A stretch of DNA of 64,000 bases, taken from sequence record MZ475891.1; one strand, 5' to 3'. The translations under genes were made by a program, and so were the position numbers. Of the stretch, positions 22,878 to 60,770 are shown piece by piece. Under the pieces are notes generated by a model that was not told where the DNA came from, searched no databases, and was given only the letters and a program-made list of their open reading frames with translations. Position 1 is the first letter of the stretch. Every line of letters begins with the position of its first letter.

Positions 22878-24125
22878 TTATTTACATGCTTTGATTGCAT
22901 CAGTGATAAGGTACTGCATGTTAAGCAGAGTAGGCTTGTTCACAGATTTAGCTCCAGTGAACTTGCCACCCATCGTCTGAGCGGTGATCTCCCAATCATT
23001 GATATCGCCATCAAAGGCAGAGAACGGAGCCTGAATAGCGACCGTCTTGCACTTGTGATCTTCGATAGTCGCTTCATAGTACCAGTCCGGGCCTTGGCCC
23101 ATACCATCGGAATGAACTGCGCGGAACTTGTATTTGCCACCTGTAGCACGCGTCAATTGATCTGCGATTTTGTTGTGTTGCGCCTGCGTGAACTTTTCAA
23201 ACTTAGCAGGGGTAACTTGCGCAAAGGCAATGTCGCCGCCCAATGGCTGGACAGGTGGGAACAGAACATATGGACCCTTCTTAGCTTTACCGCCTTTACC
23301 GTCCGTGCTTTGCACGCCAGCAACGAATGCAGCGAACGCCTTGTCGAAGTCGTTGAACGTACCCAGCTGTTTAGCTTTACGATCTTCTGGGTTACCATGA
23401 ACAACATCTTCAATGTGCTCCCCGAACTTCACGCTAGCCACAGTGAATCTACCTTTGCCTATGAGATCCTTATAGGAGAATTTCATGTCAGCGCTTTCAC
23501 CGAAAATGATAGCAGTGTTCGGTCCGTCTGGCGACGGTGTATAGAAGTAGAAGGAGTCACTTGAGCCATCATCGGCCATGCCCCCGATAGCGGAGCCAGG
23601 AACTTTCTTCAATCCCGAGAACTTAGCAATACGCTTACCTGACAATACGTCATCGCCATCATCAGGCTCAAACAGAGTTTGGAATTGTTCCATCGTGTGA
23701 ACGACTACGCCGGAAGCAGCAGAGCCAGCAGCCTTGCCAGACTTAGCATTAGTAGCAGCTACACCACGCTTGGTCGTAGCAGCAACAGCATTACCCGCAG
23801 CAGGTTTGATTTTGATCGCACGCAGAGCATTGATGGTAGCCACCAGCGTCTTCGCCTTGTACAAGTTACGCACAGCGGTGACGAGGGTTTTACCAGCAGC
23901 TTTCTTGGCGAGGCTCTGAGTAGCATCTTCGTCTTTCAGCAGCTCCAGCATCGTGGACAACTTAGACGTGTCCAGCTCTTTGATCTTAACCAGCTCTTCC
24001 AGACGTTTGATAATCACAGCAGCGTTCTTACCAAACAGGATGGCGGCGTTAGCCAGTTGAGGCTTAGTCGCAGATTCAGACTTAACCGTCTGCTCTTTAT
24101 CGAAATTCAATTTAATCAGTGACAT
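22878..24125 (-). CDS. putative internal virion protein (MSLIK...SESA family)
   Basis: N-terminus MSLIKLNF...KSESA matches 42574 and 43580. Lys/Ala-rich first third with a distinct C-terminal domain. Confidence 0.5.
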   Translation of the reverse strand: MSLIKLNFDKEQTVKSESATKPQLANAAILFGKNAAVIIKRLEELVKIKELDTSKLSTMLELLKDEDATQSLAKKAAGKTLVTAVRNLYKAKTLVATINALRAIKIKPAAGNAVAATTKRGVAATNAKSGKAAGSAASGVVVHTMEQFQTLFEPDDGDDVLSGKRIAKFSGLKKVPGSAIGGMADDGSSDSFYFYTPSPDGPNTAIIFGESADMKFSYKDLIGKGRFTVASVKFGEHIEDVVHGNPEDRKAKQLGTFNDFDKAFAAFVAGVQSTDGKGGKAKKGPYVLFPPVQPLGGDIAFAQVTPAKFEKFTQAQHNKIADQLTRATGGKYKFRAVHSDGMGQGPDWYYEATIEDHKCKTVAIQAPFSAFDGDINDWEITAQTMGGKFTGAKSVNKPTLLNMQYLITDAIKACK

Positions 24126-24134
24126 GTTAAGTCC

Positions 24135-24689
24135 TTACTTGCGGTTTTTAGTCCAGTTAGAGTTCTGAGGTTTCTTTTCGCTTTGTGGCGAAGTGTTTCC
24201 CTCGTTAATATCCTCCTCCTCGTCCTCATCTTCGTCCTCGACGACAGGCTCAGCAGCAGGCGCGGCTTCGATCTTAGTCACTTCGAGAATTTGAGAGGGC
24301 AGTGGATTCTGATTTACAGATGAAGCGACAGCAGCAGGTTCGCTTACTGTAGGCTCTACAGCAGCAGTCGCACCTACAACATGTTCGTGGACGATCTGCT
24401 TAGTCAGCAACGCGCCTTTCTCAGCGAGAATCTGATCAGCACGTTCTTGGTCCCACTTAACCCACAGGATATCGAGACCCTTGTGTGCGTACATGAAACC
24501 CTGAGGCAGCTTACCACGACCGTTGAACGGCAGGCCGTTAGAAGGAACGCCAGGCTCGAACTCATCCATCAGTTCCCACTTGCGTTTAGCCGTGATACAC
24601 TTCGGTCCCCATACACCATCACATGCACCATCGTACAGATCGAGCATGGTCATGATGACTTGGAGTTTCTGATAGAATTTATTCAGCAT
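24135..24689 (-). CDS. putative peptidoglycan-binding-domain protein with acidic tail
   Basis: LQ..M.ML.LY.G..DGVWGPKC..A...W matches the PG_binding_1 helix-loop pattern. C-terminus EDEDEDEEED. Confidence 0.55.
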   Translation of the reverse strand: MLNKFYQKLQVIMTMLDLYDGACDGVWGPKCITAKRKWELMDEFEPGVPSNGLPFNGRGKLPQGFMYAHKGLDILWVKWDQERADQILAEKGALLTKQIVHEHVVGATAAVEPTVSEPAAVASSVNQNPLPSQILEVTKIEAAPAAEPVVEDEDEDEEEDINEGNTSPQSEKKPQNSNWTKNRK

Positions 24690-24951
24690 CTTTCTTTTTC
24701 TCCGGACGAGGGACGTCTTTGCCGATGATACGTTTGAACAAACGCAAAGCCATAACAGCCTCGGTCTGAGCCATACGAGATTGCTGCTGGAACTGCATCG
24801 GATTTTCTTTCATCCAATCAACTACACGCTGCAACTCACGCGCAGTAATCAGCTTTTGGGCCAGCTTACCTTGAAGGTACACACGAACACCAGTAGTCGA
24901 AATCTTCGCTGCACTGGTGCTCTCTGCCAAATTGATCACAATTTTAGTCAT
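24679..24951 (-). CDS. small basic protein with N-terminal ESTSA tag
   Basis: 90 aa, MTKIVINLAESTSAAK. Confidence 0.6.
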   Translation of the reverse strand: MTKIVINLAESTSAAKISTTGVRVYLQGKLAQKLITARELQRVVDWMKENPMQFQQQSRMAQTEAVMALRLFKRIIGKDVPRPEKKKDAE

Positions 24952-24967
24952 TATCTTTTCCTTAAAA

Positions 24968-24987
24968 GAAAGGGGCCGAAGCCCCTT
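24968..24987 (-). terminator. intrinsic terminator after the SNF2 gene
   Basis: AAGGGGC-TTCG-GCCCCTT followed by T-tract. Confidence 0.85.
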
Positions 24988-24990
24988 GTC

Positions 24991-27900
24991 TTACACTGAC
25001 TTGTCTTTCGACGCAGTGAGTTTCAGTTTAGTCAACGCAGCCAGACACTGTTTCATGTTCGGGATGCTGTAGCCAGCTTTCTGAATACGGTTGATACGCG
25101 CTTTCGCACCAGCAACGTTCTTCACGAAACTAATCCACATACCAGACGACAGGCTGAACGTACCGAACTTACGAGTGTTCGGGATTTTCGTTCCCACGAA
25201 GCGTTTCACTTTCGGGTTAGTCGCAAGGTCGAACATGATACGCAGACGATCTTCCATCACCATCGGATATGCTTTGATGTGCTTAACATCTTTCGCAGAG
25301 GTGTGACGAATCTGGAAGAACTGTTTCAACTGCGACTGTGCCTTAACAGCCAGCTGGTAGTTGAAGCTAAGTTTAGGCGTAGACTCATCGAAGAAGTCCT
25401 GAACGAACTCCAGACGGCGAGAGGACGGACCGTCAAAGTCCAGCTTCTTAGCCTCGATGAAGTCCAAGAACTTCTCAAAGTCAGAGTAGTACGCGCAATC
25501 GATATACACGTAATCCCCGAACTCGGTGAACTCGAAGTCCTTGAGCGCTTTCGCATCAGGGTCGGTCGCATCTGCATACAGAGCAACAAAGCCGTTGTAC
25601 ACGGTAGGCGTCAGTTCCAGAGACATATCGGTACCGTCGTCCAATGTAACAGCAGCACCACGAACAGCCTTGCGCACTTTGTTGTCCAGCGGAGGAAGTT
25701 CAGCAGCCTTACGACGACGAACACGGGCAGCTGCCTGCTCTACGCCTTCGTTGATTGGCTTACCTTCTTCTTTGTTCGCTTTACGTTGAGTAACGCGGGC
25801 GTTCTTACGCTCTTGAGCCTCAACTTTCTTCTCGGTTGCTTTCGAGTCGGCAGTTTGAGTCTCATCGGTCACGGTGTCTTCGACTTCAACGCGCTTGGCT
25901 TCTGCCTCAACACGCTTACGGTCTTTAGCTGTCGCCCACGGCTTACGCACTTCAAAGAAGCGTTTCAGATCAGCAGGAGATACCTTACCAGCGTAATGCA
26001 CTTTGTTCGCAGGCACAGTAACGATTTCCTCGCCACCAGCAAGACGAACACGCACGGTACTGATAGGGCTGTCAGCACGCAGCTTACCGTCAGCAGTACG
26101 AACCGTAACGCTCACGATGATACCGTTACCGAACTCAGTCACAACAGGTGCACGGTTCAGCGCGTCTTTAACGTTCTCACCTGAGGAGAAGTTCTGGTTG
26201 CGTGCCCAATCAAGCAGACGCTCCAGTCCCCAGTTATGACGGTCTGGGATCTTCTGGTTAGCAACGATAGGTACCTGCTCCATGATACGGAAGTCACGCA
26301 GAGCTGGAGTAGCAGGCAGCGGCTGCATTGCTGCAATCGTTGTCTTACGCATCTCTTGGAACTCTTGCGCTTCAATATCGTTCAGGTCACGCTTGGCCAG
26401 GAAGTACGGTTTAAAGTCTTCCATCGTGTTGTTATCGATCAACAGACTTGCATTCATCTTGATTGGAGCAAGCTGATACTGGTCAAGTTTCTCGTAACGC
26501 TGGTTACCTTTCTCATCGAAACGAGTTTTCTCCAGCGTTTTCCACATCAGACGTGCAACCTTACCTACTTCAAGAGTCTTGTTCGTCATCACCCAATCGA
26601 TGAACACGGCTTCGCGTTTCATATCGCCTGGCTTACCGTTCTCATCAAGCACGGCAGCAGCAACGTCAGGACGGAAGATACGCGCAGTAGACTGATCGTA
26701 TGTACCTGGTGACCACGGGGTGTCGCAGCGAATGATACGACTACCCATCTGCATGTTGTGGCCTTCACTGATTGCCTGTTCGTTAGCAATCAGAATCTGC
26801 ACACGGTCATCGGTCTTGAACGCGTCAAGGTTGGCCTCTTTGTTTTGGCCTAACTTACCGACTTCACCGTGATACACAACAGCGACCTTCTTGTAGTTCT
26901 CAGGCAGAGAGTTATAGATTGCGTTTGCAGCACGCGTGTAGCGAGTGAACACAATCAACTTGCCCTGAACCTCTGGCTTCCAGTAGTCTGGGTCTTCCGG
27001 AGGTGGAACCATTGAAGGTGGCAGTGTTTGACGCTGGAACTCTTCGGACTGTTTACGTGCCAGATACTTCTGACCCTGATAGACAGCCATGTCAAGCTCA
27101 CGAGGAGTAACGCCCTGCGTCCAGTTAAAGATTTGCTGCTCTTTGACCAGCGGGTCACGTTCAGGCTGCACTTCAAAGTGCTTGCGAATACGCTCGATGA
27201 TAGTCAGGACTTTCGCAGAAACGAACTTGGTGACACCAGCGTTTTCAAACGTCAGACGAGCAACGTCATCACCCATCGGGTCGGTCAGCATCATCTCCAT
27301 GCGCTGGAAGTACATGTTGAGGTCAGCGTTACCTGCGAGCAATGCGCCCAGGTCATCACCTTCTTCAATATCATCTTCATCAATGTCGTCAGAGGCAGTA
27401 GCTTCTGCACCGTCCTCTTCGTCATCTTCACCAGCAGATGCAGCACGGCGTTTGGCGTTGTTAGCAGCTTCCTGCAACTTCTCCAGTACCTGAGCATACA
27501 TCGCGTTATACACCTCTTGGTGCAGCGATGAGTTAGGCACAGTCGGGTCATCAATCTCAACCTGAATGAAGGTATCGATTGGGTTCGGCAACATGAACGC
27601 CCAGTTCTTACGCTTGAACGAGATGAACGCAGTGTGGTTAGACATACGCGAGTGAGCACGACGAATCATTTCAATGTCGTCTTTCGCGCCGTCGTATGCA
27701 ACGTCGAGAGAATCACCGAACATCGCAGGCGTCATCAGTGCAGCCTGACCAACAATGTCACGTACGCGGTCAGTTACCAGAGTACCAGTAGCGATACGCG
27801 CATAGCGAACAGATGGTGCGGTGAATACTGCTTTGGTATTGAAGTGCACCTGAGAACCAGACTGGCCTCCAGAGAAGTTCTTAACCTTGTGCGACTCATC

Positions 27901-30825
27901 CAGCATAACGTAGCTGAAATTGAAGCGGTTAACGAACTCAACAGCACCACGTACGCGAACACGCACACCACCAATGTCAACGTTGAACGTACCGGTCTGC
28001 AAGAAGCTCAGGCCAACGATGAAGAGGGTGTTCTGAGGAGCCTGCTTAATCACGTCGTACATACGGTCTTCACCCCAGGAGTTCACGGTGTCAGACGTAA
28101 TAGGTACGGCGTTCCAACCATCAGCAATCTTGTGCAAGTCATCACACCAGTTCGATACGAGGTTGGTAGGGCAGATGATCAGAGGACGAATGTTCTCTTC
28201 ACCCAGGTCATTCAGCTCCTGAATGGTAGCAGCAATATCGGACAGACCGATGATTGTCTTACCGCCGCCAGGCGCGATAAAGACTGTAGCGTAACGCGGA
28301 CGGCGGCGAAGTGTTTTGTGCGCTTCTACCTGATGTGGTAAGAGTGCAGCACCTGCTTTGAGTCCAGGAATACGAATGTCTTCAATCGTGATACCCTGAT
28401 CAGGCTTGAGGCGTTCGATCTCAGTTTCCGCAGATTCGAAAATCTCCAGAGACTTAGGAATGACCGCGCTATACAGCTTGGAGAATGGCAGAATGATTTG
28501 CTGCAAACGTTCTGCGCCTGGCGCTTCGTCGCTTTCAACCAGAGAGCTAAACAGCTTCTTACGATCAGCACTGCCGATAGCAGCAGCCAGCTCACGATAC
28601 AGCGCACCACCGAAGTAGTTGTTCAGTCGCGCCATGTCGCTGATTTTGGCAGTCTGACCCATCACGAAGTAATGCGTGTGATTAGGCAGAGACTCCATAG
28701 CACCAGCAATGTCACCGCTCATCTCAGTAACGGTAGTCGCTACCATGTTAGAGCCGCGTAGGCCAGATGCATCGTTGAGCACGCGCAGCATGATACGCAT
28801 AGCAATCAGGCCAGAATCACCCTGAGCCAGAGTAAAGTCATTCTCAATCAGACCCGCGTACAGGTTGCTGTCGAGAGAGCTTTCGGTCAGTGACGCGTTC
28901 TCTGCATCCATGCCGATTGCAGCACGCGCTTGCTTAATCAGCGTAGGCAAATCAGGCACCAGCTTGTGGTTGAATGCGAAAGAATACGCAGCCACAGTCT
29001 GTGCGATGATGCTAACAAGGCCATCAACTTCCGAGTCTTCGGTGGTCGTGAACACGATGGTCTTGTCGTTGACGCTATCGATCAGTTTGCCTTTCGCAGC
29101 TTCCAGTTTAGCCGCCTGCAACAGCAGGTCATTAGCAACACGATACGAGGTCATGTTACCGCTAGACTGATTGCTCATGATGTTGCGAATAACGTTCGAC
29201 GCTGAGCGGAAGTTAGGCGTTTCGCCAGGCTCTGCAAAGTCGTAGCCCAGCATATCAGCAACGTCTAACGAGTTAGGCGCTTTCATGCCGACAGTACGGG
29301 TTTCGTTAACCGACAGGCCACCACCGTTCGAGGTGTTAACCACCAGCGCGAAGTCTGGGTCGACGCCGATACACACGTTGCTGAATCGCGTTAACGATTT
29401 GGCTTCCGCCTGCATCGAGTTATCGAAGTCGAGGTTGCCGTTCTGAATAGCGAAGATGTTGGTACGCAGCGTCTGGTGTTCAGTAGACAGCGGTACGCCT
29501 TTCGCAAACAGATGCTCCAGCACGCGGTTCAGTTCGGTTTCGTAGTTGCGCACCATCTCAACGTCAATGTCTTCACGGCGAGGCAACACAGACAGCGTAC
29601 CGTTAGGCATGATGGTCAGATCGTTTTCATCTGCCACAACATCGTGGACAGCGTAGCCGAACTTCTCACGCAGTTGTTTGAGCGCAGGCAGGCCAGTAGC
29701 AGAGGTAACGTAACGTGGGATACGCGCAGCACGCGTGATACCAGTACGAGTAGAACCACTGATACGGAAGTAATAGCTCGTCCAGCCCTGGAACCAACGA
29801 TACAGACACATGGTCTGAGTGTCAGCACCCTGAGAGATGTACTCAACCATCTCTTTGCTCAGGTTAACAATCAGGCCGCCTTCTGCACGAATGTCGGTAG
29901 CGATTGCTACTTCGTTGAACTCCAGCGGATAGTCGTGGCTGATCTTCATCGCTTCGAGTTTGCGATCAATCATCTGCTTGCCTGGAATAGAGCGCAGGCC
30001 CAGAGTCATGAAGTCGCCGAGCGCATCAACAACGTCTTTGTCCAGATTACGGAACAGGTTGATATCCAGATTGTGCATCTTCGGGTGCACACCACGCAGC
30101 GCCGCGTTGTAGATAGACCAGTCTTTGCCGAGAGGGATACGAACAACTTTGGTCTGGAACACGTTGGCGTTGGTACGCGCTTCACCGAAGATATCCTTGT
30201 ACAGGGTCTTCGCGGCGTTGATAGCTGCCTGAGCAATGTCAGAGCTATACACCTGAATGTTCATCTGCTCAAAGTTAGAGTCGTTATCGACACGAGGACG
30301 ATCACTACCCTGACTGTTCGTAACGTTGAAGTTACCCGCACCAGCAGCTGGAGACTGCGGGCATGGCGTGCCTGACATGATAATGTCTTTGCCGCCTGGG
30401 TACACGGTACTGTTTTCGATGATAGCGCCTGAGGTATTGCTCAAGTTTTCCGCTAACGCCGTTTTGATTTCACGCGACAGCTTACCACTGTTCAGCAGCA
30501 CCTGAATCTTGTTCGTGGACATGTCCACATATTGCTGCACACGCTTGGTGAACTCTTCTGGCGCTACTTCCAGAATGTCTTCGAACTCAGCACCATTACG
30601 GATGATGTAGTTGAGCAAGTCGAATGCTGCATAGATACGGGCGACAGTTGACGCAGAGAACACGGCCAGTGTTTCATAGTGACGGCGTGCTTTGCCTGTC
30701 ACGTACATCTTGGACATGAGCTGCTCGGAGCCGAACGGTACAGGTTTTACCGCCAGCGCCTGATTAAAGCTATCAGCAATTTGCTGGGTCGCTGTGGCGG
30801 AGGTACTGATAATCTGATTCATCAT
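24991..30825 (-). CDS. giant SNF2-family helicase/ATPase
   Basis: LLPHQ, APGGGKT, PLIICP..L..NW, LDESH, ATGT, EGHNMQ, PWSPG...QSTARIFR. About 800-aa N-terminal and 450-aa C-terminal extensions. Confidence 0.88.
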   Translation of the reverse strand: MMNQIISTSATATQQIADSFNQALAVKPVPFGSEQLMSKMYVTGKARRHYETLAVFSASTVARIYAAFDLLNYIIRNGAEFEDILEVAPEEFTKRVQQYVDMSTNKIQVLLNSGKLSREIKTALAENLSNTSGAIIENSTVYPGGKDIIMSGTPCPQSPAAGAGNFNVTNSQGSDRPRVDNDSNFEQMNIQVYSSDIAQAAINAAKTLYKDIFGEARTNANVFQTKVVRIPLGKDWSIYNAALRGVHPKMHNLDINLFRNLDKDVVDALGDFMTLGLRSIPGKQMIDRKLEAMKISHDYPLEFNEVAIATDIRAEGGLIVNLSKEMVEYISQGADTQTMCLYRWFQGWTSYYFRISGSTRTGITRAARIPRYVTSATGLPALKQLREKFGYAVHDVVADENDLTIMPNGTLSVLPRREDIDVEMVRNYETELNRVLEHLFAKGVPLSTEHQTLRTNIFAIQNGNLDFDNSMQAEAKSLTRFSNVCIGVDPDFALVVNTSNGGGLSVNETRTVGMKAPNSLDVADMLGYDFAEPGETPNFRSASNVIRNIMSNQSSGNMTSYRVANDLLLQAAKLEAAKGKLIDSVNDKTIVFTTTEDSEVDGLVSIIAQTVAAYSFAFNHKLVPDLPTLIKQARAAIGMDAENASLTESSLDSNLYAGLIENDFTLAQGDSGLIAMRIMLRVLNDASGLRGSNMVATTVTEMSGDIAGAMESLPNHTHYFVMGQTAKISDMARLNNYFGGALYRELAAAIGSADRKKLFSSLVESDEAPGAERLQQIILPFSKLYSAVIPKSLEIFESAETEIERLKPDQGITIEDIRIPGLKAGAALLPHQVEAHKTLRRRPRYATVFIAPGGGKTIIGLSDIAATIQELNDLGEENIRPLIICPTNLVSNWCDDLHKIADGWNAVPITSDTVNSWGEDRMYDVIKQAPQNTLFIVGLSFLQTGTFNVDIGGVRVRVRGAVEFVNRFNFSYVMLDESHKVKNFSGGQSGSQVHFNTKAVFTAPSVRYARIATGTLVTDRVRDIVGQAALMTPAMFGDSLDVAYDGAKDDIEMIRRAHSRMSNHTAFISFKRKNWAFMLPNPIDTFIQVEIDDPTVPNSSLHQEVYNAMYAQVLEKLQEAANNAKRRAASAGEDDEEDGAEATASDDIDEDDIEEGDDLGALLAGNADLNMYFQRMEMMLTDPMGDDVARLTFENAGVTKFVSAKVLTIIERIRKHFEVQPERDPLVKEQQIFNWTQGVTPRELDMAVYQGQKYLARKQSEEFQRQTLPPSMVPPPEDPDYWKPEVQGKLIVFTRYTRAANAIYNSLPENYKKVAVVYHGEVGKLGQNKEANLDAFKTDDRVQILIANEQAISEGHNMQMGSRIIRCDTPWSPGTYDQSTARIFRPDVAAAVLDENGKPGDMKREAVFIDWVMTNKTLEVGKVARLMWKTLEKTRFDEKGNQRYEKLDQYQLAPIKMNASLLIDNNTMEDFKPYFLAKRDLNDIEAQEFQEMRKTTIAAMQPLPATPALRDFRIMEQVPIVANQKIPDRHNWGLERLLDWARNQNFSSGENVKDALNRAPVVTEFGNGIIVSVTVRTADGKLRADSPISTVRVRLAGGEEIVTVPANKVHYAGKVSPADLKRFFEVRKPWATAKDRKRVEAEAKRVEVEDTVTDETQTADSKATEKKVEAQERKNARVTQRKANKEEGKPINEGVEQAAARVRRRKAAELPPLDNKVRKAVRGAAVTLDDGTDMSLELTPTVYNGFVALYADATDPDAKALKDFEFTEFGDYVYIDCAYYSDFEKFLDFIEAKKLDFDGPSSRRLEFVQDFFDESTPKLSFNYQLAVKAQSQLKQFFQIRHTSAKDVKHIKAYPMVMEDRLRIMFDLATNPKVKRFVGTKIPNTRKFGTFSLSSGMWISFVKNVAGAKARINRIQKAGYSIPNMKQCLAALTKLKLTASKDKSV

Positions 30826-33387: not shown

Positions 33388-34215
33388 TTAGAAGCTGTGT
33401 GCGCGAATACGATCAGCCAGAAGCGAGAAGTATTCAGGGCTGTAGCGATACACCTTAGCGTAGTAGTCGAGCAGCTTAGGCACATCAACACCAGCAGCGG
33501 CAGACACGCTATCCAGCGCAGGGAACTGGCGCTCGTCAAGCTCATCGCTCGGCAGCACAGCTACCATTGAAGATGAGGTGATTTGTTCGTTGTTACCTTC
33601 GAAGTCAACAACAAGGAAGCTGTTGTCGTCAGTAACACGCGCAGCGACGAAGCCAACGGTCAACGCACCAGACGCAGACACGAAGCTAATCATGTCACCG
33701 CCCTGAGCACCAGCACGGTCAGCAGCATTAGCAGACAGAGCCTGGGCAACTTCTGGCAGACGTGCATTCAGGTTGAAAGCAGCAGCACCAGACACAGAGC
33801 GAATCATATCGATCAGGTCGGCGTTATCGTTTGCTTCTGACTGGCGCACCAGAACATCTTCACCGCTTTCAGATTTGCGAACAGCCCACATGCGCTCTTG
33901 TTTGTCCATGTACATATTCTTGGACAGAGCCTGGAACTCATCGCCCATCTGAGCAACAGGAACGATATCCTGCATACGGGTCAGAATGGTACGAACGAAG
34001 CTGGAGGTTTTACCCTGCTCAATCATCGAGGTCGCACCCTGAACAGGCATGAACTCGCGATCACAGGAAGCACTCACGATAGCACCGAAATTATCGGTAA
34101 TATCTTCGTTTGGGGTATGTGTAACTTGCACGATGGCCACACTCTGGGTGTCGTTGAGCTGGTCAATCTGCTTGATGAAAGCGTCCATTGTCATCTCCTG
34201 GGATATGTTTGACAA
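33388..34215 (-). CDS. hypothetical protein, probably virion-associated
   Basis: 275 aa in a structural-looking cluster. An internal ATG after GGAG is an alternative start. Confidence 0.55.
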   Translation of the reverse strand: MSNISQEMTMDAFIKQIDQLNDTQSVAIVQVTHTPNEDITDNFGAIVSASCDREFMPVQGATSMIEQGKTSSFVRTILTRMQDIVPVAQMGDEFQALSKNMYMDKQERMWAVRKSESGEDVLVRQSEANDNADLIDMIRSVSGAAAFNLNARLPEVAQALSANAADRAGAQGGDMISFVSASGALTVGFVAARVTDDNSFLVVDFEGNNEQITSSSMVAVLPSDELDERQFPALDSVSAAAGVDVPKLLDYYAKVYRYSPEYFSLLADRIRAHSF

Positions 34216-35434: not shown

Positions 35435-36509
35435 TTAAATTGCGTAGCTGGTCATTGAACCCACCGGATATAAGCGCTCTCGCCATATTCAAGTGATTCG
35501 AAGAAACTGCACGCACAACCTTAGCCTGATACTCTGGAACGTTTTGCATGTTCTGAGTCAGGTTGTAGAAATAGCTGCGCACAAAGTTAGTTCGCTCCAC
35601 ATTGCTCGCTTCCATATCAGACGTATCTTGCGTCGGAGTAAGAAGCATATACAGGGCAGCAAGCAGTTCAGGAGTCGGGTCAACAATCTGCGATGCGATA
35701 GCGGCACTAAGTTTCATCATGCCTTTCGCAACGAAGTCCGCGACAGTTTTGTCGATATACTCGGTGCCAGACTTGCCTACGTTCGGAAGATATAGTTTCG
35801 GCAGAATGTACATGCAGAAGTAAAGAGGGAAGTCTTTACGCATAACGTCCGAGATAAGCATCTCTGAATAGTCTTTCCAGATGTTCACGTTGTAGTGCCA
35901 TTCATCGTACGGCACAGTGCGCATCAGGTTAGACACACTCAGGTCGAGCACCTGATTGGCTGTCGTAGCCAAGTCGATGTAGTTTGCAGCAGGCGAAAGG
36001 GACGCACTCGAAACCAATTGAACGTAGTTACGAGTCACGGCACCAACAGTGTTATAGATAACATTGAGGAACTCAAGTCCGTTGCCGTTAAGCGCAAACA
36101 ACACAGAGCGAGGTAGACCGACAGTCAGGTATTCGTTATTGTCAGCTACACCCCATAAACGCCAATAGCGCCCACGACCAAGCTGCGTCAGAGGTTGAGG
36201 CAGCACGCGGTTGGGGCGCGGCTTGAGGCAAAACGTGAAGCAGATACCGCTGTCAATCATGATCACTGAATCATCAGGACGATTCGAGTAACCCATCGAC
36301 ATTTGATTGTCGGTACTGAATACGTTAACCAGAGTGAAGTTCAGAGCTTTGGTGAAAGGCATCTGAGCTTCAATTATCTGGGAGATGACTTGACGCAAGA
36401 TAGTGTCAAGCACATAAGGAGAAGCACTTCGCATTTGTTGCGGTCGATACTGACCACCGAAAGTGCTTTCCTTGAATGTGCGATCTACCTTGTAGTGGGT
36501 CATTGCCAT
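35403..36509 (-). CDS. hypothetical protein, probably virion-associated
   Basis: 368 aa, coupled to 36509..37798. Confidence 0.55.
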   Translation of the reverse strand: MAMTHYKVDRTFKESTFGGQYRPQQMRSASPYVLDTILRQVISQIIEAQMPFTKALNFTLVNVFSTDNQMSMGYSNRPDDSVIMIDSGICFTFCLKPRPNRVLPQPLTQLGRGRYWRLWGVADNNEYLTVGLPRSVLFALNGNGLEFLNVIYNTVGAVTRNYVQLVSSASLSPAANYIDLATTANQVLDLSVSNLMRTVPYDEWHYNVNIWKDYSEMLISDVMRKDFPLYFCMYILPKLYLPNVGKSGTEYIDKTVADFVAKGMMKLSAAIASQIVDPTPELLAALYMLLTPTQDTSDMEASNVERTNFVRSYFYNLTQNMQNVPEYQAKVVRAVSSNHLNMARALISGGFNDQLRNLIEYLGLTKAG

Positions 36510-37798
36510 TACTTGACCGACTGTTTAAGCAGACGCTTCTGTTGAGGACTCAGACCCATAACGTCGGAGATTTGATCAATCTTCGCCAGAGTCAGAACGC
36601 CTTTAGCAGTACCGCTAGAACCAGTCAAGCTGATCTTAACGAACTCACGTCCTTCACGACCTGTGACCAGCTGGTGGATAAGAGTGTTCTTACCGCTACG
36701 GCCTGCACGTAATGCGCTGCTTGCCATGCCCAGAATCTCGGTAACAGCTTCGCGCTTCTCAGAAGGAGACAGGCCAGGAACGAGACGCACATAAAGGCTA
36801 TCGTTCTGCACACGCACGGAGTCGAAGATTTCTTTGTTACGACCACGAACGGTGTGCTGGCGTTGACCCAACTGAGTCATGTTACGCAGGTCATCAGTCG
36901 AACGATTGATAGGCTTACGTTCGCTGTAGTTCAGGAATCCATCCAGAGCCATCAGCTGGTTGATAGCACGCTTCATTTCAGGAGCGGTTTCAATCAGACG
37001 GCCCAGTGGGAATGAGTTAGGAACTTTCTCATCCACCAGCGAGGTGATGTAGTTTTCACTCAGACCAGTAGCCACTGCAATCTTGGTAGAGACTACGATA
37101 GCATAGGTCGGATAGTGCAAGCCGTCAGAGTTCACGAAGTTATCGATGAACACATAGGTCTGGAAGATGATTGGGTCAGTACCCTGCGCGATGAAAGTAC
37201 GTGTACGAATCTTAGAGTAATCTTCTTTACTCAGAATCTTCGACAGGTAGTTAGCGATGGTAGCAGCCAACTTGGTGTGTTCTTTCGGTGCGCCGTTCTT
37301 AACGTCAATGCTCATCAAACGCACCAGCTGGGTTTGCTGGTCTTTGGCCTGATTGATAACACTAAGCAGTGACTTGGAAGCGCCTGTCTGATCTTTGAAG
37401 GCACTGAACGTTTTGCTATTCAGAATCTGATAAGCAACGGACAACTCGCCGATAGCCTGAGACAACTGACTGACCTGAGCGTTATATTTAGCTTTGTTCT
37501 GGACGTCAGAAATATCAATCTTCGACAAGTCGATCACTTGGTTCAGATCGATTGACTTGGCCTGTTTACCTTTGATTGAGCCTTCCAGATCAGAAAGTTC
37601 AATCGCTTTAGGGCTGGCGCTAACAGACAGCAGCTTCTTAGGAATGGTTACAGAAGTAGCAAGAGAGATAACGTTTTCAAGTACCTTCTTGAACTCTTTA
37701 GCAGTACGTGCATTACGCAACGCCACCATGTTCCCAGAGCCGTAATCAACGGATGCGCTGATGCTGCTAACTTCATTGTTTTTGGCAGTCTTAGCCAT
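36509..37798 (-). CDS. hypothetical protein, probably virion-associated (SSISA tag)
   Basis: Likely start is ATG 37798 after GAGGA: MAKTAKNNEVSSISASV. Confidence 0.55.
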   Translation of the reverse strand: MAKTAKNNEVSSISASVDYGSGNMVALRNARTAKEFKKVLENVISLATSVTIPKKLLSVSASPKAIELSDLEGSIKGKQAKSIDLNQVIDLSKIDISDVQNKAKYNAQVSQLSQAIGELSVAYQILNSKTFSAFKDQTGASKSLLSVINQAKDQQTQLVRLMSIDVKNGAPKEHTKLAATIANYLSKILSKEDYSKIRTRTFIAQGTDPIIFQTYVFIDNFVNSDGLHYPTYAIVVSTKIAVATGLSENYITSLVDEKVPNSFPLGRLIETAPEMKRAINQLMALDGFLNYSERKPINRSTDDLRNMTQLGQRQHTVRGRNKEIFDSVRVQNDSLYVRLVPGLSPSEKREAVTEILGMASSALRAGRSGKNTLIHQLVTGREGREFVKISLTGSSGTAKGVLTLAKIDQISDVMGLSPQQKRLLKQSVK

Positions 37799-42573: not shown

Positions 42574-43569
42574 TTATTTACGTTTGGCTTTCTTAGCCAC
42601 ACCGTACTCTGGGTTCTTGTCAGAGATATTGTACTGACGGCCACCAGCTTCCTGGATCATGTCAGGCAGTTCATCCAATCCAGTTTTCTCAGCGTGAGCA
42701 CCCGTGAACTGGTAAGTCTTACCATCTTTAGCCATAATCTCAATTGAACCATTCTTGCCGATAGAATAATTCATATGCTTGAGATCAGATTTACGGAAGC
42801 CAGGAATTTCTTTCTTGGCGTTGGCCAGCATAGTTTTTTCTTCTGCTTCCCACTGCTTGCGCATTTGTGCCAAACGCTTCGCACCGCCTGGTTTCATTTT
42901 CTTCATTGCACCAGGACGAACTTGTTTCTGTGCAGGCTTCTTCCTTAGCATCGGTTTAGTAGCTGCATCTACTTCATCCATGGACAGAACGCGGCCTTTA
43001 GCCGGCGCTTTCTTAGCTGCTTTGGTGATAGTCTTGCTGCCCAGCGCATCGAACTTGGCAGAAGCCAGGAACTTAGGCTTGAACTGACCACGCTTACCAG
43101 TAACACCGAACTCGTTCAGTTTGGCAGTGCGCAGCGCAGCTAACACCTTAGGTGCTTTTTCAGTGATGCCCTGAAGAGAAGTTGAGGTCAGGCCCATCTT
43201 CAAGCCAGACAGTCCGTGCTTACGTGCATAAGACGCAGACTCTTTCAGATGCAACTTGGCTTCTTTCAGTGCAGCGCTGCCCTTAGCTTTATAGTCAGCA
43301 GCTTTGGCAGAAGCGCGAGACTTTGCATCACCGGTCAGCGTTTTGACTTTAGCGCGGGTCTTGCTCCACGCATCGATGTTACGCGCAGCACTAATGCCAG
43401 CAGTCTTAGCTTTCTTCAAATGACCGAGGATGGTGGTCAGTTCTGCTTTCTTCTCTGAGTTAATAACCAGAGTAGCAACGCCATTCACCTTAGCGATTTT
43501 GTAGCTAGGCTTTTTAGCAGCAGACTCAGACACAACGTGATCTGCAAGATTGATTTTAATGAGTGACAT
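42574..43569 (-). CDS. basic putative internal virion protein (MSLIKINL...VSESA family)
   Basis: Lys/Ala-rich. The N-terminal ~110 aa is paralogous to 43580. Confidence 0.55.
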   Translation of the reverse strand: MSLIKINLADHVVSESAAKKPSYKIAKVNGVATLVINSEKKAELTTILGHLKKAKTAGISAARNIDAWSKTRAKVKTLTGDAKSRASAKAADYKAKGSAALKEAKLHLKESASYARKHGLSGLKMGLTSTSLQGITEKAPKVLAALRTAKLNEFGVTGKRGQFKPKFLASAKFDALGSKTITKAAKKAPAKGRVLSMDEVDAATKPMLRKKPAQKQVRPGAMKKMKPGGAKRLAQMRKQWEAEEKTMLANAKKEIPGFRKSDLKHMNYSIGKNGSIEIMAKDGKTYQFTGAHAEKTGLDELPDMIQEAGGRQYNISDKNPEYGVAKKAKRK

Positions 43570-43579: not shown

Positions 43580-44581
43580 TTATGCGTTGTATTGAGTCAA
43601 TGGCCGTGGCTTACGCTTCGGCAAACGTTTTGTTTTTATACCAGCAGCTTTATCTGAGGCGCGTTTATCTTCGCGTGCAGAGATGCCAACTGTTTGTGAC
43701 AGGTAGCTGGTCAATGAAGCCTTAGACAAGGTTTCTTTGCGCTTGCCTGAGTCAACAACATATGAATTGCCCGAAGCGTGCGTGATCTTGAGCTTGAGCT
43801 TACCATTATCATAATGGATGTTGCCGTCAGCATCACCGTACAGTTTGGCAGACGCAGCTTTTTCCTGATACTTCTCCAGCTTGTCGATAATGCTACGCAG
43901 AGCGCTACTGCTTTTGTAGATATTGTTCAGATGTTTCTTACCTTCGTCCACTTTAGGCGCGGCAGCTTTCTTCGTCACAGGCTTTGTAACTAAACGCTTG
44001 GTAGTTTTCACAGCAGGTGCTTTACCCGAAGCTGCGATCTTCTCACCAATCTTATCGAACTTATCACCAGTAGCATATCGAGGCTTCAAAGGTACTGTGT
44101 GATGTGCACCGTATTTTGCACGGAAACTATCAGGCTTCGCTTTACTGATCTTGCCTAACGTATAGGTCGGGTCAGTTTGTGTGATATACGACGCTTTGAT
44201 GGACAGGTCGAGCGCACTCAAGCCAGCTTTTTTCAAAAGATCAGCAGCAGCTTTAGCAAGTGCTTTGGCTTCTGTTACACCGTGCTTGATAGCTGCTTTG
44301 TTATCACTAATCTTTTCACGAATAGGCGCTTTCTTTGCAGGGGTCTGAGCCTGACTTAGCTTGAGTTTCAATTTCTCAGTAGCAACACCAAGCTTTGCCG
44401 CAGACACACCGAGAGTTTTGGCCTTCTTGAGATTAGCAACGGCCTTCGTAACAGCGGACTTGTGTTTGCTGTCAATTACGAGGGCCTGTGCACCGCCGAT
44501 AGGAACGAGATGATAAGCTGGCTTGGCTTTGGCGGATTCAGATACTGCAAACTCCGCCAAATTGATTTTGATAAGTGACAT
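43580..44581 (-). CDS. basic putative internal virion protein (MSLIKINL...VSESA family)
   Basis: Tandem paralog of 42574 at the N-terminus. Confidence 0.55.
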   Translation of the reverse strand: MSLIKINLAEFAVSESAKAKPAYHLVPIGGAQALVIDSKHKSAVTKAVANLKKAKTLGVSAAKLGVATEKLKLKLSQAQTPAKKAPIREKISDNKAAIKHGVTEAKALAKAAADLLKKAGLSALDLSIKASYITQTDPTYTLGKISKAKPDSFRAKYGAHHTVPLKPRYATGDKFDKIGEKIAASGKAPAVKTTKRLVTKPVTKKAAAPKVDEGKKHLNNIYKSSSALRSIIDKLEKYQEKAASAKLYGDADGNIHYDNGKLKLKITHASGNSYVVDSGKRKETLSKASLTSYLSQTVGISAREDKRASDKAAGIKTKRLPKRKPRPLTQYNA

Positions 44582-44590: not shown

Positions 44591-45187
44591 TTAGACTCTG
44601 CCGGTCATAGTAAATTCTTTGCCCGCAGAGTAATCTCCTAAGGCCGCATAAAGAGAATCACGCAACATCTTCTGAATGATATCCGAGTTATACGCGGACG
44701 CGTCGCGGAAAGCGACTTCAACAGTTTCAGTGCGTGGGTTGATCACAGCATAACGCAAAGGTGCAATCTCCTGAGCGTCACACCACAGATCGACAACGTG
44801 CTGTAGTCCAGGCGTCATCTGAATTTTGAAATCAGACAGCAGGAACACAGCACTTTGAATTGGCGGCGGAGCAGACTGAGAGACAACAGCATTGTCTCCA
44901 AGTTTCTCCATAGCCATAGACGCATTGTACACTGAGGAGAATTTCGTTTTCAGTGCAGAGGTCTGTACTACCTTATAGCTATTCGATGAAATGCCCTGAC
45001 GGCGCAGCTTGGCAATACGCACAACGTAATCACCAGAATCGTCTGAGGCAAATGCAACGTAAGCGTAGCTCACGAAGCCAGGCTCCTCACTAAGCAGCTT
45101 GTGGTCAAGGGCACGAACACCCAAGACAGCACTAAGTGCCTGTAGGCCCATCTGAACTTCGCGGGAAAGAGACACGTACATTTCCAT
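44591..45187 (-). CDS. hypothetical protein (MEMYVSLSR tag)
   Basis: Likely start is ATG 45187, just after the endolysin stop. Confidence 0.55.
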   Translation of the reverse strand: MEMYVSLSREVQMGLQALSAVLGVRALDHKLLSEEPGFVSYAYVAFASDDSGDYVVRIAKLRRQGISSNSYKVVQTSALKTKFSSVYNASMAMEKLGDNAVVSQSAPPPIQSAVFLLSDFKIQMTPGLQHVVDLWCDAQEIAPLRYAVINPRTETVEVAFRDASAYNSDIIQKMLRDSLYAALGDYSAGKEFTMTGRV

Positions 45188-50016: not shown

Positions 50017-50463
50017 TTAATATCTACGAGGCTTCTTAGGCTTCTTGATCGTAGACTTAGGACGCTTGATAGCCCGCAGTGCTTTGCGTGCTTCCACAAT
50101 TTGTTTGGCTACAGTGGAACGACGAGCTTTGACCTGGTCTGTATCTTGGTCAGTGCCTTTCAGCTTATCGAGTCTGTTCCATTCTTGCACCAGACGATCA
50201 ACAACACCAGCACGACCTACGCGTTGCTGGTTGATGCGCACAATGTCCTGATGAGTCTTCACGGAGTTTTGTGCGTCTTTCTGTTTAGCACGCGCAGATG
50301 CAACGTGGTCAGAGTTACCCTCAGCAGACTTCTCGTTAAGCTGCTTACGTCTAAGTGCCAGACGGCGTTGCGCTTGCTTGAGTTCGTCTTTGGAGTTCTC
50401 CAGTTGCGTCTGCATGTCTTCAAGAGGACTTGAGCGTGCGCTCAGACTAACGAGAAGTTCCAT
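50017..50463 (-). CDS. basic coiled-coil protein (MELLVSLSA tag)
   Basis: Start ATG 50463 after GAGGA. Confidence 0.6.
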   Translation of the reverse strand: MELLVSLSARSSPLEDMQTQLENSKDELKQAQRRLALRRKQLNEKSAEGNSDHVASARAKQKDAQNSVKTHQDIVRINQQRVGRAGVVDRLVQEWNRLDKLKGTDQDTDQVKARRSTVAKQIVEARKALRAIKRPKSTIKKPKKPRRY

Positions 50464-50470: not shown

Positions 50471-51022
50471 TCACACAGGCTGTATGGTAATGATCTGGAC
50501 GCCTTGTTCATTACGCGACTTGAGAATGCGGAAGCGGAAGTCTATTGGATAAATCCATTCGAGTTCATCCATAAGACCATCAAGAATCATCTCACGTTCT
50601 TCTTCGTCACCACCGAATTCTTTATCAAGATCAGCAGCCATGATAAGATTGTACGTGCGTTGCCAATAGTTGAAGGCTTTGTTCTTTGGCCCAGGAAGAA
50701 TCTCCAGCATCGTATCTGTCTTGCCTGCCTTTGCAAAACCTTTAGCAGTAGCGAAGTCTTGACTGAACGACAGGTACTTGTTGATCATCACGAAAGGATT
50801 CTTAGCCTGCTTAAACAGAGCCATGAGTTCTTTTTCGTACAGACCACGATACAGAGGCATCTCAGGACGCTCGGGATATTTAGCGATCAGATCATCAAGC
50901 GCAGGGCTGGAGCGATTAGCGTCAATCACATGCCCTTTATCGTGGAGCATCGTCCACATAATGTCTTGCTGTCTGTCGGTGTAGGCAGGTATCTTAGCAC
51001 TGAGGCTAACCATAAGTTCCAT
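50471..51022 (-). CDS. putative ADP-ribosyltransferase (R-S-E class; VIP2/Alt/Mod-like)
   Basis: LYRG, YLSFS and ELEWIYPIDFRFRI give the ordered R...S-x-S...E-x-E triad. N-terminus MELMVSLSA. Confidence 0.7.
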   Translation of the reverse strand: MELMVSLSAKIPAYTDRQQDIMWTMLHDKGHVIDANRSSPALDDLIAKYPERPEMPLYRGLYEKELMALFKQAKNPFVMINKYLSFSQDFATAKGFAKAGKTDTMLEILPGPKNKAFNYWQRTYNLIMAADLDKEFGGDEEEREMILDGLMDELEWIYPIDFRFRILKSRNEQGVQIITIQPV

Positions 51023-51038
51023 ACATGTTCCTTAAAAG

Positions 51039-51150: not shown

Positions 51151-51699
51151 TCAGACGGTACCTAATACTTCAAGCACATCTTCGTCGTCCACACTTGCAG
51201 ACCACGAACGCATAACAGAAGCATTGCCGCGATTGCCTGTCAGCATTGATTTAACTGCTGGTGTGGCTTCGATTTCGGCATAGTGTTCCAAGAGAGCTTT
51301 GTCATCTTTGAACCACATAATGGAGTTACCGTCCTTAGGGACGATCAAGAATTGGGTAGGCTTCTGGGTGACGTTTAACGTCAGGTAGTAATCACCAGCA
51401 CCTTTAGGAGTCAGCATCGGCATTGGCTTCATCGCATACATGAAGTCCTTAGCGTGCATGAGTTTCTGATCGCCGAGCAACCAGATTGCGCCTTCTTCGC
51501 CTTGACGCACAGCAGACAAATCGCCTTTACGTGTTGCAATCGTTCCGAATACATCTTTATCGAAACGTGACAGACCGAAGATCAGCGATGCGAGACGCTT
51601 CAGGTCCGGGGTCGTGCATGGACTGTTGATTACAGCCATACCCTCAGACCCAAGTGTGAATTTAGAGAGTGAAATAAAGAGTTCCATCGTAACGTCCAT
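51151..51699 (-). CDS. hypothetical protein (MELFISLSK tag)
   Basis: 182 aa; alternative ATG at 51687. Confidence 0.6.
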   Translation of the reverse strand: MDVTMELFISLSKFTLGSEGMAVINSPCTTPDLKRLASLIFGLSRFDKDVFGTIATRKGDLSAVRQGEEGAIWLLGDQKLMHAKDFMYAMKPMPMLTPKGAGDYYLTLNVTQKPTQFLIVPKDGNSIMWFKDDKALLEHYAEIEATPAVKSMLTGNRGNASVMRSWSASVDDEDVLEVLGTV

Positions 51700-51752: not shown

Positions 51753-51782
51753 AAAAAAGGGCGACCCTTAGGCCACCCTTTT
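51753..51782 (-). terminator. intrinsic terminator
   Basis: AGGGTGGCC-TAAG-GGTCGCCCT followed by TTTTT. Confidence 0.8.
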
Positions 51783-51797
51783 GTTAGTTATTTACCA

Positions 51798-59724: not shown

Positions 59725-59753
59725 ATCGTGATTACCTGAGTTTTTCTATCTGA

Positions 59754-59762
59754 TATTTACAG
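59754..59762 (-). promoter_or_regulatory. motif A upstream of the minimal polymerase
   Basis: AATCTGTAAATA. Confidence 0.55.
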
Positions 59763-59782
59763 ATTCAGACTTATCTTATGAC

Positions 59783-60100
59783 CCGTACGCTACAGCGCTT
59801 GGTACGGCTACAGCTACTACAGCGGAGCTAGCGGGATACGCGCTTGGCTTGCTCGAAACATGGAAGGAGAGGTACATCTTTAGGCGGCACGTTTTGTAGA
59901 GGCTGAATCCGAGAGATTAGCACTATCAATGCCCCTCCACCCATGCTGGAGCTGCTTAGAATAGCATTCTGTTAGGATAATTTAGGTCGTCTAAACCGTG
60001 TAAATTTTCCCGAGAAAACAGACGATTTTCCGTAAAACACGCCCGTTTTCAGACAAAAACCAGAAAAATCTTAATAAAATCAAGGACTTTTCCGAAAACT
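59783..60100. repeat. origin-like non-coding region with short direct repeats and phased A/T tracts
   Basis: CTACAGC three times (59790, 59808, 59817), inverted repeat CCGTAC/GTACGG, and TTTTC..AAAA units at 60005, 60026, 60046 and 60088. Confidence 0.5.
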
Positions 60101-60110
60101 ACTCAGGAAA

Positions 60111-60770
60111 TCACTTCTTGCGAGAGATCTTTTGGTTCAATTTCTTACCGATTTGAGACAAAACGCGCTCGACTGTTTCACCGTCACGTTCACCGATAGC
60201 CATAGCGAGCCTTTCGCCCTGTTCACGCGATAGCTCAGGCATAATCAGCTTGAGCATCTTTGATCGCGCCTTTGCAGACTTTGATTTGCCTCTTGACAGC
60301 GATTGCGTTTCCATTTCGGCAGCAACACGGCTCATTGTGCGCTGCACGCGACGATCTGCGAATATATCACCGAAGATATTGCCAAACAGGTCCTGGAACG
60401 AACGTCCTCCACCAAATATCTCATCCTTTGTGAAGCGCACTTCCTTTCCTAGCGCATTGCGCTTAACGCTGTGCGTGCTTTCCACTTCGTTTTGGACGCG
60501 TGCACCTTCGATGAAGTTCTCATCAGGCCGCGATTTCTTACCTTCAGCGCCGGGCTTAGTGACGCCGTTACGCAGCTCAGCACGCCCCTCAACAGCCGCG
60601 TCAGGGTCAAACATGTCATCAGTGTTGACGCTTTGGTTAGGGTCAAAGGGAATCTTGTCTGTCAGCTTGTTTTCATCTGGCCACGAACGAGGGATATCCG
60701 ACGCCGGTTGTGGGCTATTTGTCATATCACCGTTCTTCTCACTGTTCAGACTCACATAAATCTTGGTCAT
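60111..60770 (-). CDS. hypothetical protein, probably virion-associated (MTKIYVSLNS tag)
   Basis: 219 aa, GGAG RBS. Confidence 0.55.
   Translation of the reverse strand: MTKIYVSLNSEKNGDMTNSPQPASDIPRSWPDENKLTDKIPFDPNQSVNTDDMFDPDAAVEGRAELRNGVTKPGAEGKKSRPDENFIEGARVQNEVESTHSVKRNALGKEVRFTKDEIFGGGRSFQDLFGNIFGDIFADRRVQRTMSRVAAEMETQSLSRGKSKSAKARSKMLKLIMPELSREQGERLAMAIGERDGETVERVLSQIGKKLNQKISRKK

Follow-up and report, generated by a model that had tools for sequence, protein, structure and literature searches.

Here, we describe a short N-terminal leader, ending in a Ser-x-Ser (S-x-S) motif, that is borne by about 18 otherwise unrelated proteins of Erwinia phage pEa_SNUABM_13. The analysis covers a 64,000-nucleotide stretch (hereafter the window) of the 264.7-kb genome of this phage, corresponding to record positions 124001-188000 of MZ475891.1; window bases 42000-52000 are 100% identical to pEa_SNUABM_13. 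The minus strand carries almost all genes of the window and every tagged one, and a tRNA and Rfam search of the window returned no match. The clade of pEa_SNUABM_13 comprises jumbo myoviruses of the PaBG/Lu11/Y3/Yoloswag/Alexandra/Dickeya-AD1 group (PMC7412058). We put at roughly 70% the probability that the leader is a capsid address label that is removed by the head protease, and that its cargo is injected with the DNA.

The principle is already known, from the capsid-targeting sequence (CTS) of T4 and from propeptide processing in phiKZ-like phages. New here are the motif, how short the leader is, the clade of phages in which it occurs and a good part of the predicted cargo. Neither the PaBG paper, the paper on Dickeya jumbo phages nor a comparative jumbo-phage review was found to describe the leader.

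A short S-x-S leader on unrelated proteins

The initial annotation had quoted eleven N-termini with a common S-x-S-[A/K/R] tag. All eleven are found in the sequence. The genes run on the minus strand, however, so that the coordinates attached to them (such as 22878 and 24679) mark where each gene stops, and the leaders lie at the high-coordinate ends. Nine tags are carried by GenBank-annotated starts (pEaSNUABM13_00180, 182, 183, 191, 198, 199, 208, 209 and 210), one by a better alternative start (gp200), and one is a variant (gp222) whose membership in the tagged set is uncertain. The earlier count of about eleven thus holds for the window, but at least seven further carriers lie outside it, and the leaders are of two types.

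The excess of the motif at N-termini over shuffled controls, which the initial annotation would lead one to expect, is present in the window, in the genome and at held-out loci. Within the window, 9 of 68 proteins have S.S[AKR] among their first 25 residues, compared with 1.6 expected from interior windows (binomial P = 3.5e-5); across 2000 shuffles, the count averaged 1.2 and never exceeded 6. Genome-wide, with the 346 annotated proteins of the 99%-identical pEa_SNUABM_7 serving as the proteome, S.SA in residues 2-22 was counted in 15 of 346 proteins (3.4 expected; P = 2.7e-6), S.S[AKR] in 21 (7.4 expected; P = 2.4e-5) and hydrophobic-x-S-x-S-[AKRST] in 17 (4.05 expected; P = 1e-6). The motif used for the genome and window had been picked after the data were seen, whereas the pattern was fixed beforehand for the held-out tests, which therefore weigh most. 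These gave S.SA in 8 of 65 genes of three metagenomic relatives (1.5 expected; P = 1.3e-4), two of the eight being conserved tail-sheath N-termini that are probably unrelated, and in 5 of 32 genes at the Alexandra locus (about 0 expected).

The statement that the downstream sequences are largely unrelated also stood up: in an all-against-all BLASTP comparison of 21 sequences deprived of their leaders, only gp198 and gp199, gp180 and gp254, and gp141 and gp157 were linked, and the tag therefore sits on at least 12 independent families. A short N-terminal leader common to otherwise unrelated proteins, as in a CTS-type system, was found on 17-18 carriers. Several of these had been described as very basic, and 11 of 18 tagged proteins have an isoelectric point (pI) above 9, compared with 27% genome-wide. 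A DNA-level repeat or common 5' cassette was rejected; Ser codons and upstream sequences differ among the tags, and selection therefore acts on the peptide rather than on a DNA cassette. An S-x-S near the N-terminus of the clamp loader was likewise rejected as a tag. Its surroundings are rich in Lys and not hydrophobic, neither Alexandra nor PaBG conserves it, and we regard it as background.

These results bear on the possibility that the resemblance is functionless, arising by chance or as leftover paralogue similarity from the duplication of neighboring genes. The post hoc definition of the motif, the three paralogous pairs (gp198/199, gp180/254 and gp141/157) and the adjacency of gp208-210 would be in keeping with such an origin. 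We nevertheless regard it as very improbable, given an excess of about four-fold or greater at P ~1e-6 genome-wide that recurs in held-out genomes, the 12 or more carriers without detectable similarity beyond the leader, and the stronger conservation of leader residues than of the bodies that follow.

Alignment of 18 leaders on the motif revealed Ser at both P3 and P1 in 18/18, Ala directly after the motif in 15/18, a hydrophobic residue at P5 in 16/18 and Val at P4 in 7/18, with leader lengths ranging from 6 to 18 residues. The originally proposed S-x-S-[A/K/R] is therefore real, but better written as hydrophobic(P5)-x-S(P3)-x-S(P1), with Ala preferred next. The scissile bond would lie after the second Ser, or possibly after the Ala. 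Type A leaders read M-[SA]-L-I-K-[IL]-N-[LF] followed by about 8 residues and S-E-S (gp180, gp198 and gp199, with gp182 similar), and type B leaders read M-E-[LI]-x-[VI]-S-L-S (gp200, gp208, gp209 and gp210, as well as gp127 and gp253).

Signal peptidase I follows a -3/-1 rule, and S-x-S followed by Ala superficially fits it. Of the explanations considered, Sec, Tat or lipoprotein export signals with a small-x-small signal-peptidase site are nonetheless the least probable. By inspection, the leaders span 6-18 residues with a hydrophobic run of at most about 5, and those of type B start with M-E and lack a basic n-region. Among the carriers, moreover, are an SNF2 ATPase, a DNA ligase and an ADP-ribosyltransferase (ART), which act on cytoplasmic targets. 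The combination of basic n-region, core of at least about 7 residues and small-x-small site that marks such signal peptides was not seen in these tags.

The tagged genes of the window are compiled in Table 1, together with two candidate substrates from the head module. The window carriers comprise the SNF2 ATPase, the ART and eight proteins without a function assigned by Pfam or PHROG family; gp191 matches PHROG 36434, to which PHROG assigns no function, and Pfam and PHROG searches placed gp182 in no family. The body of gp180 is related only to gp254, outside the window, and its counterparts in Yoloswag and JA13 have leaders ending in STSA or SVSA. Alexandra encodes counterparts of gp200 (its gp199, N-terminus MEIFVSLAK), gp208 (gp211, MKILISLSV) and gp210 (gp212, MEIFVSLSK).

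Table 1. Tagged genes and candidate head-module substrates. Positions are those of the window unless another record is named.
Feature	Position	Strand	Length (aa)	pI	Leader	Next residue	Leader encoded at	Remarks
gp180	22878..24125	-	415	9.3	MSLIKLNFDKEQTVKSES	A	24072-24125	type A leader
gp182	24679..24951	-	90	10.2	MTKIVINLAESTS	A	24913-24951	
gp183	24991..30825	-	1944		MMNQIISTS	A	30799-30825	SNF2-family ATPase
gp188	33388..34188	-	266	4.4				acidic; adjoins head-tail connector; six S-x-S
gp191	36509..37798	-	429	9.7	MAKTAKNNEVSSIS	A	37757-37798	
gp198	42574..43569	-	331	10.3	MSLIKINLADHVVSES	A	43522-43569	type A leader; gp199 paralogue
gp199	43580..44581	-	333	10.2	MSLIKINLAEFAVSES	A	44534-44581	type A leader
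gp200 (probable true start)	44591..45187	-			MEMYVSLS	R	45164-45187	type B leader; GenBank start 45247
gp208	50017..50463	-	148	10.7	MELLVSLS	A	50440-50463	type B leader
gp209	50471..51022	-	183		MELMVSLS	A	50999-51022	type B leader; Alt/Mod-like ADP-ribosyltransferase
gp210	51151..51687	-	178		MELFISLS	K	51664-51687	type B leader
gp222	60111..60770	-	219	9.2	MTKIYVSLN	S	60744-60770	possible variant leader (S-L-N for S-x-S)
gp149	pEa_SNUABM_7 L006:8885-10957	-	690					between major capsid protein and protease; upstream of window in pEa_SNUABM_13
Carriers outside window (genome-wide list)								gp83, gp127, gp141, gp156, gp157, gp253, gp254

For gp200, an ATG at 45187 lies 20 codons inside the annotated open reading frame (ORF) and 7 nt past the gp201 stop, whereas the GenBank start overlaps gp201 by 53 nt. 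Because the overlap vanishes with the internal ATG and the remaining gap is 7 nt, the true start is probably 45187 and the annotated one probably wrong.

Outside the window, gp127 is a Nudix hydrolase (leader MMLNVSLS, then A) and gp156 an NAD-dependent DNA ligase (MKVRLSIS, then A). In gp141 and gp157 (pEa_SNUABM_7 L006:2431-3108 and 18251-20197), the leader is directly followed by a KMPT-N domain (PF20294), otherwise known as the N-terminal module of phage 'polyvalent' proteins; the same domain also begins gp150, the gene adjoining the protease. Beyond these ligase, Nudix and KMPT-N assignments and the SNF2 and ART proteins of the window, Pfam and PHROG yielded no functions for the tagged set.

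At the DNA level, GC-rich hairpins GGGCTTCGGCCC and GGCGGGCTTCGGTCCGCC precede gp182 and gp209 (window 24952-24990 and 51023-51060), each followed by a T-run and, immediately ahead of the start codon, TTTTAAGGAA, so that a terminator-like element abuts the ribosome-binding site.

Leader conservation in predicted cargo families and virion data from PaBG

At 217 kDa, gp183 is the largest predicted cargo. Its earlier assignment to the SNF2 family is confirmed by Pfam (SNF2-rel_dom and Helicase_C) and by PHROG 21391. Orthologues keep the leader at 55-63% identity (JA13, MQIFSTSA; Yoloswag, MLISTSK), and so does the PaBG orthologue at 29% identity (MGSLFTLNSLSA). The structural proteome of PaBG, determined by sodium dodecyl sulfate-polyacrylamide gel electrophoresis and matrix-assisted laser desorption/ionization of CsCl-purified particles, comprises 14 proteins (PMC7412058). 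Virion band 1 is gp202, of 221 kDa (PMC7412058), and this protein (PaBG_00202, 1969 aa) is the leader-bearing orthologue of the window SNF2 protein. Band 9 is gp83, to which no function is assigned (PMC7412058); it begins MLIKINLLEAVAAKA, and in a profile comparison only 11 leader residues, including LIKINL, were common to it and the gp199 family. The PaBG authors also noted that some virion proteins are proteolytically processed (PMC7412058). The paper on the Dickeya JA/AD phages contains no proteomics.

The ART assignment of gp209 holds as well, with a match to PHROG 832 (RNA polymerase ADP-ribosylase; E 2.6e-13), while Pfam and PDB sequence searches, the latter with the ART profile, gave no match in the database copies used. 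Across eight orthologues of 66-99% identity, the R / S-x-S / E-x-E signature of ARTs is invariant, as Y-R-G (R59), L-S-F-S (S85, S87) and E153-x-E155. In the leader of the same proteins, S6, L7, S8 and A9 are invariant and residues 2-5 variable.

A full HMMER scan of 1.84 billion representative proteins identified 25 relatives of gp199. Of these, 24 start with a type A leader ending in S-E-S-A or a close variant (S-A-S-A in P0174); the N-terminal pattern of the family is M[SA]LI[KR]IN..SESA. The remaining one, P0190, has an S-Q-S-A leader at an internal Met after an unrelated N-terminal region, and its start is probably mis-called. In two-module relatives, a second HFDSESA or VESESA stands exactly where the second module begins. 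Because S-E-S-A recurs at the module junction, this site behaves as a cleavage site would, and not as a mere protein-start signal. Two metagenomic proteins, P0181 and P0186, combine an N-terminal type A leader with S-E-S-A at the junction to a gp199-like module and look like small polyproteins meant for splitting.

In the AlphaFold2 (AF2) model of gp199, the predicted local distance difference test score (pLDDT) stays under 50 for residues 1-18, and folded structure sets in near residue 21, so that the leader is predicted to be a separate disordered peptide. A Foldseek search of this model against the PDB retrieved only non-significant coiled-coil look-alikes.

In the SNF2, ART and gp199 families alike, leader residues are more conserved than the bodies. 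The tagged genes occupy hypervariable clusters that differ between genera: in Alexandra, the corresponding regions are not conserved as DNA and hold another assortment of small genes, eight of which have type A or B leaders. Leader-like N-termini occur in PaBG on topoisomerase I (MHTSLSA), gp217 (MLMIAEA) and others, some with Ala for Ser. In metagenomic relatives, the leader is found on topoisomerase I, ligase and proteins matched by the Acb1 Pfam family.

The last of these, which match the anti-CBASS 2H phosphoesterase family (L018:4265-4789, L019:5887-6390 and L020:1725-2210), start with the leader-like peptides MQISIS, MEIAIDVNA and MQLQISISA, respectively. An Acb1-type homologue in PaBG (182632-183165, annotated as LigT-like) starts MQIKVAMYSA, and BLASTP found none in the Snuvirus genome. 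Anti-signaling enzymes may thus be packaged in some members of the clade. Also in PaBG (179714-181105, L015), the PaBG_00224 ORF continues upstream as far as an ATG at 179714, and its 463-aa product has the N-terminus MLLSLSLAS, then K. Since the homology of this product to a leader-bearing L019 protein of 503 aa spans its entire length, the deposited PaBG_00224 is probably truncated at its N-terminus.

The head protease and its candidate substrates

The head genes lie outside the window and were analyzed in pEa_SNUABM_7, where they encode the major capsid protein (MCP) gp147, followed by gp148, gp149, gp150 and the protease gp151. The latter matches PHROG 18299, 'head maturation protease'. 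The AF2 model of a 90%-identical Alexandra protein (pLDDT 84.8) had 49 matches in BFVD at E <= 1e-3, many of them labeled prohead serine protease, COG3740 or Peptidase U9; dozens of matches to annotated prohead proteases had E values of 1e-4 to 1e-7. The modeled fold is that of a prohead serine protease (HK97 gp4 / T4 gp21 / assemblin type). H124 and S181 are invariant in 35 homologues and are probably the catalytic residues. The consensus of these 35 sequences begins S-x-S-F, and gp151 itself begins MTQLIKSES-F, with the motif inside the first 18 residues, which are disordered in the model.

In one metagenomic relative (L018:9059-10750), a 51-codon ORF duplicates the protease N-terminus; next come a GIY-YIG (LEM-3-like) endonuclease gene and, after it, the complete protease gene. 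This arrangement resembles the insertion of a homing endonuclease accompanied by duplication of the 5' end.

The motif also accumulates in gp149, a protein with Cys-rich N-terminal motifs and a poly-Asp/Glu center. It contains 22 S-x-S compared with 8.2 +/- 2.6 expected (0/2000 composition-preserving shuffles), and a hydrophobic residue precedes 16 of the 22, compared with 2.8 expected. Among these sites are four EDFDSES repeats and PTLVSLS-R, identical to a type B tag. Homologues in L018, L019 and L020 are S-x-S-enriched as well (14, 66 and 15 of 2000 shuffles reach the observed count), and no enrichment was found in the PaBG homologue gp82. PHROG labels gp149 an 'ATPase', with no Pfam domain; from its sequence, it looks like a multiply cleaved scaffold or core protein, not an ATPase.

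A further candidate substrate, gp188, has an internal site, AIVSAS then C, at residues 37-41 (34066-34080). The site near residue 40 is kept in JA13 (AVLSES then A), Yoloswag (AAVSES then T) and PaBG (ITASAS then P), and gp188 is probably either a core protein or one with a longer propeptide. The conserved block bounded by the SNF2 and head-tail connector genes also contains gp186 (32109-32474, minus strand), an HNH endonuclease gene found at the same place in JA13, Yoloswag and PaBG.

For the MCP, about 70% of 95 homologues keep A-L-S-Q-S then TGE (residues 31-35). Another candidate site, LVHSQS then N (residues 63-68; A-P-S-A at 69-72 in PaBG), is kept in close relatives only. Removal of about 70 of the 368 MCP residues would agree with the PaBG capsid protein, which is reported to lose 'about 20%' of its mass.

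The placement of the motif in head proteins is relevant to a reading in which the leader is recognized by a factor outside the head, be it gp216, a protease or unfoldase of the host that targets an N-terminal degron, or a timing or localization factor, and the tagged proteins are not in the virion. Such a factor is available in principle, since peptidase or Zn-metalloprotease is the annotation given to gp216 and PaBG gp182; a DNA ligase or Nudix hydrolase inside a capsid would be unusual, and the direct virion data come from PaBG, not from this phage. On the other hand, the prohead protease family has the motif conserved at its N-terminus, gp149 and gp188 are enriched in it, two leader-bearing PaBG proteins were found in CsCl-purified virions, and nearly all tagged genes share the minus-strand block with structural genes. 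Recognition outside the head is, in our view, rather unlikely.

The main rival to an address label accepts that the prohead protease cuts at S-x-S, and holds that the leader is a removable cap, such as a zymogen-type or folding propeptide, with head entry governed by other parts of the protein or by co-assembly with the scaffold. Cleavage-site behavior is indeed the best-supported part of our interpretation. Packaging, moreover, need not require a cleaved leader, since 42 head proteins of SPN3US are packaged uncleaved (PMC10052503). Both gp192 and PaBG gp191 are very basic, and the latter is in the virion without this leader. A bare cleavage site, however, needs no conserved hydrophobic segment of 5-12 residues at the exact N-terminus; LIKINL upstream of the site is common to unrelated bodies, including the PaBG virion protein gp83, and M-E-[LI]-x-[VI] is common to unrelated neighbors. 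We therefore judge the cap to be unlikely, if somewhat less so than recognition outside the head.

The gp192 gene (37972-38637, minus strand), just after the SbcD gene, encodes 221 residues (pI 11.8, 31% Lys+Arg) and has no leader. At the same position, PaBG gp191 is a very basic, leaderless virion protein present in several gel bands. The phage protein may be a histone-like internal head protein that is loaded by a different route.

Together, these data lend indirect support to the packaging and head-protease reading advanced in the initial annotation, through the conservation of the leader in orthologues down to 29% identity, the N-terminus of the protease, gp149, the junction sites, the predicted disorder of the leader, and PaBG gp202 and gp83. 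Several observations weigh against it. The evidence for tagged proteins in virions is indirect, coming entirely from the relative PaBG, and the masses in the PaBG table are predicted ones and thus silent on the processing of gp202 and gp83. In PaBG, some leaders have degenerated, Ala standing in for Ser (MLMIAEA, ..AVAAKA), and the orthologues of the ligase and Nudix hydrolase have no leader there; the tags on these two enzymes are N-terminal extensions specific to the lineage and may be a coincidence. The protease has no match in Pfam at E <= 0.01 (including S77, S78 and U9), and hence no curated family, and none in a PDB sequence search; the top PDB structure match of its model, T4 gp21 (5jbl), is non-significant (E 0.08). 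We saw no covariation between protease and substrate: a subclade with L-D-x-[KR] in the MCP keeps both the S-x-S protease N-terminus and the cargo tags, and the MCP site at residues 31-35 may not be cleaved. Finally, gp216 (window 55402-56376) is a second, unrelated peptidase and a possible alternative processing enzyme.

A model for cargo loading and its known counterparts

If the leader is a capsid address label, it would draw the protein into the procapsid core during head assembly, and the prohead serine protease gp151 would cut at hydrophobic-x-S-x-S, with Ser at P3 and P1. The same activity would remove the leader, trim the N-terminus of the protease, take off the propeptides of head proteins and chop gp149. 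Mature cargo would remain in the head and enter the cell with the DNA; it would comprise the 217-kDa SNF2 ATPase, the ART and many small basic proteins of unassigned function, as well as the NAD-dependent ligase and Nudix hydrolase encoded outside the window. By analogy with T4, the leader may be sufficient for targeting.

More tentatively, and at somewhat less than even odds, the whole PaBG/Alexandra clade preloads its capsids, through one portable leader of 8-18 residues, with a modular, fast-exchanging enzyme kit that is injected before gene expression. Such a kit might include, with the same reservation, ligase, Nudix hydrolase, topoisomerase I and, in relatives, Acb1-type phosphodiesterases, none of them previously known from virions, in addition to SNF2 and ART proteins.

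Should the leader work as proposed, one sequence rule would predict the injected proteome of an almost unstudied clade of jumbo phages that includes biocontrol candidates for fire blight. It would yield about 18 candidate first-strike proteins, mostly functionally unassigned and probably directed at host defenses, and would suggest that enzymes can be delivered pre-made, among them ligases, Nudix hydrolases, SNF2 translocases and, in relatives, phosphodiesterases of the Acb1-like kind. The prohead protease would have an S-x-S specificity, unlike the Glu-P1 sites of T4 and phiKZ-like phages, and foreign proteins could be packaged in a large capsid by means of the leader, as a very short tag.

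A close counterpart is the T4 CTS of IPI-III and Alt, which is removed by gp21 at a cleavage site that ends in Glu. In both systems, an N-terminal leader of about 10 residues is the sole common feature of diverse, fast-evolving and mostly basic proteins. The T4 leader ends at the head protease site and its cargo is injected with the DNA, as predicted here. The T-even internal-protein loci are hypervariable, with the leader as the constant part (PMC3012670), and in T4, as here, the carriers in such loci include an ADP-ribosyltransferase (PMC3012670). The two leaders have no sequence similarity, however, and with Ser at P1 in 18/18 tags, the putative S-x-S site falls outside the sequence family of T4 CTS and gp21 substrates. 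Two leader types occur here. The list of predicted cargo is also longer, extending to the 217-kDa SNF2 ATPase, the NAD-dependent ligase and the Nudix hydrolase, to which relatives add topoisomerase I and Acb1-like enzymes.

A second comparison is with the phiKZ-like phages (phiKZ, 201phi2-1 and SPN3US with its protease gp245), which are also jumbo myoviruses and also rely on a prohead serine protease acting on many head and ejection proteins, as predicted here. SPN3US gp245 cuts after A-X-E (PMC10052503), a motif that likewise spans three residues, P3-x-P1, in which P3 is small, and that is preferentially preceded by Val at P4 (PMC10052503). Propeptides with several motif copies and self-processing of the protease, which we suggest for gp151, are further common features (PMC10052503). 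In contrast, P1 is Glu in SPN3US and Ser here, most SPN3US propeptides span 111-254 residues compared with 6-18 for the leaders, and the self-processing site of gp245 is C-terminal, whereas that of gp151 would be N-terminal. Moreover, pEa_SNUABM_13 belongs to the unrelated PaBG group, and no chimallin or virion RNA polymerase was noted.

A third is the Dar anti-restriction system of phage P1, in which DarB, a very large helicase-type protein, is carried in the head. PaBG gp202, a Coomassie-visible band, is likewise a very large helicase-family virion protein; gp183 and DarB are likened by description, and the only domains detected in gp183 are SNF2 and Helicase_C. Finally, Iyer et al. (2017) reportedly described 'polyvalent proteins', whose typical KMPT-N domain (PF20294) directly follows the leader in gp141 and gp157. 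Unlike in those proteins, the functions are here spread over separately tagged polypeptides instead of being fused into one.

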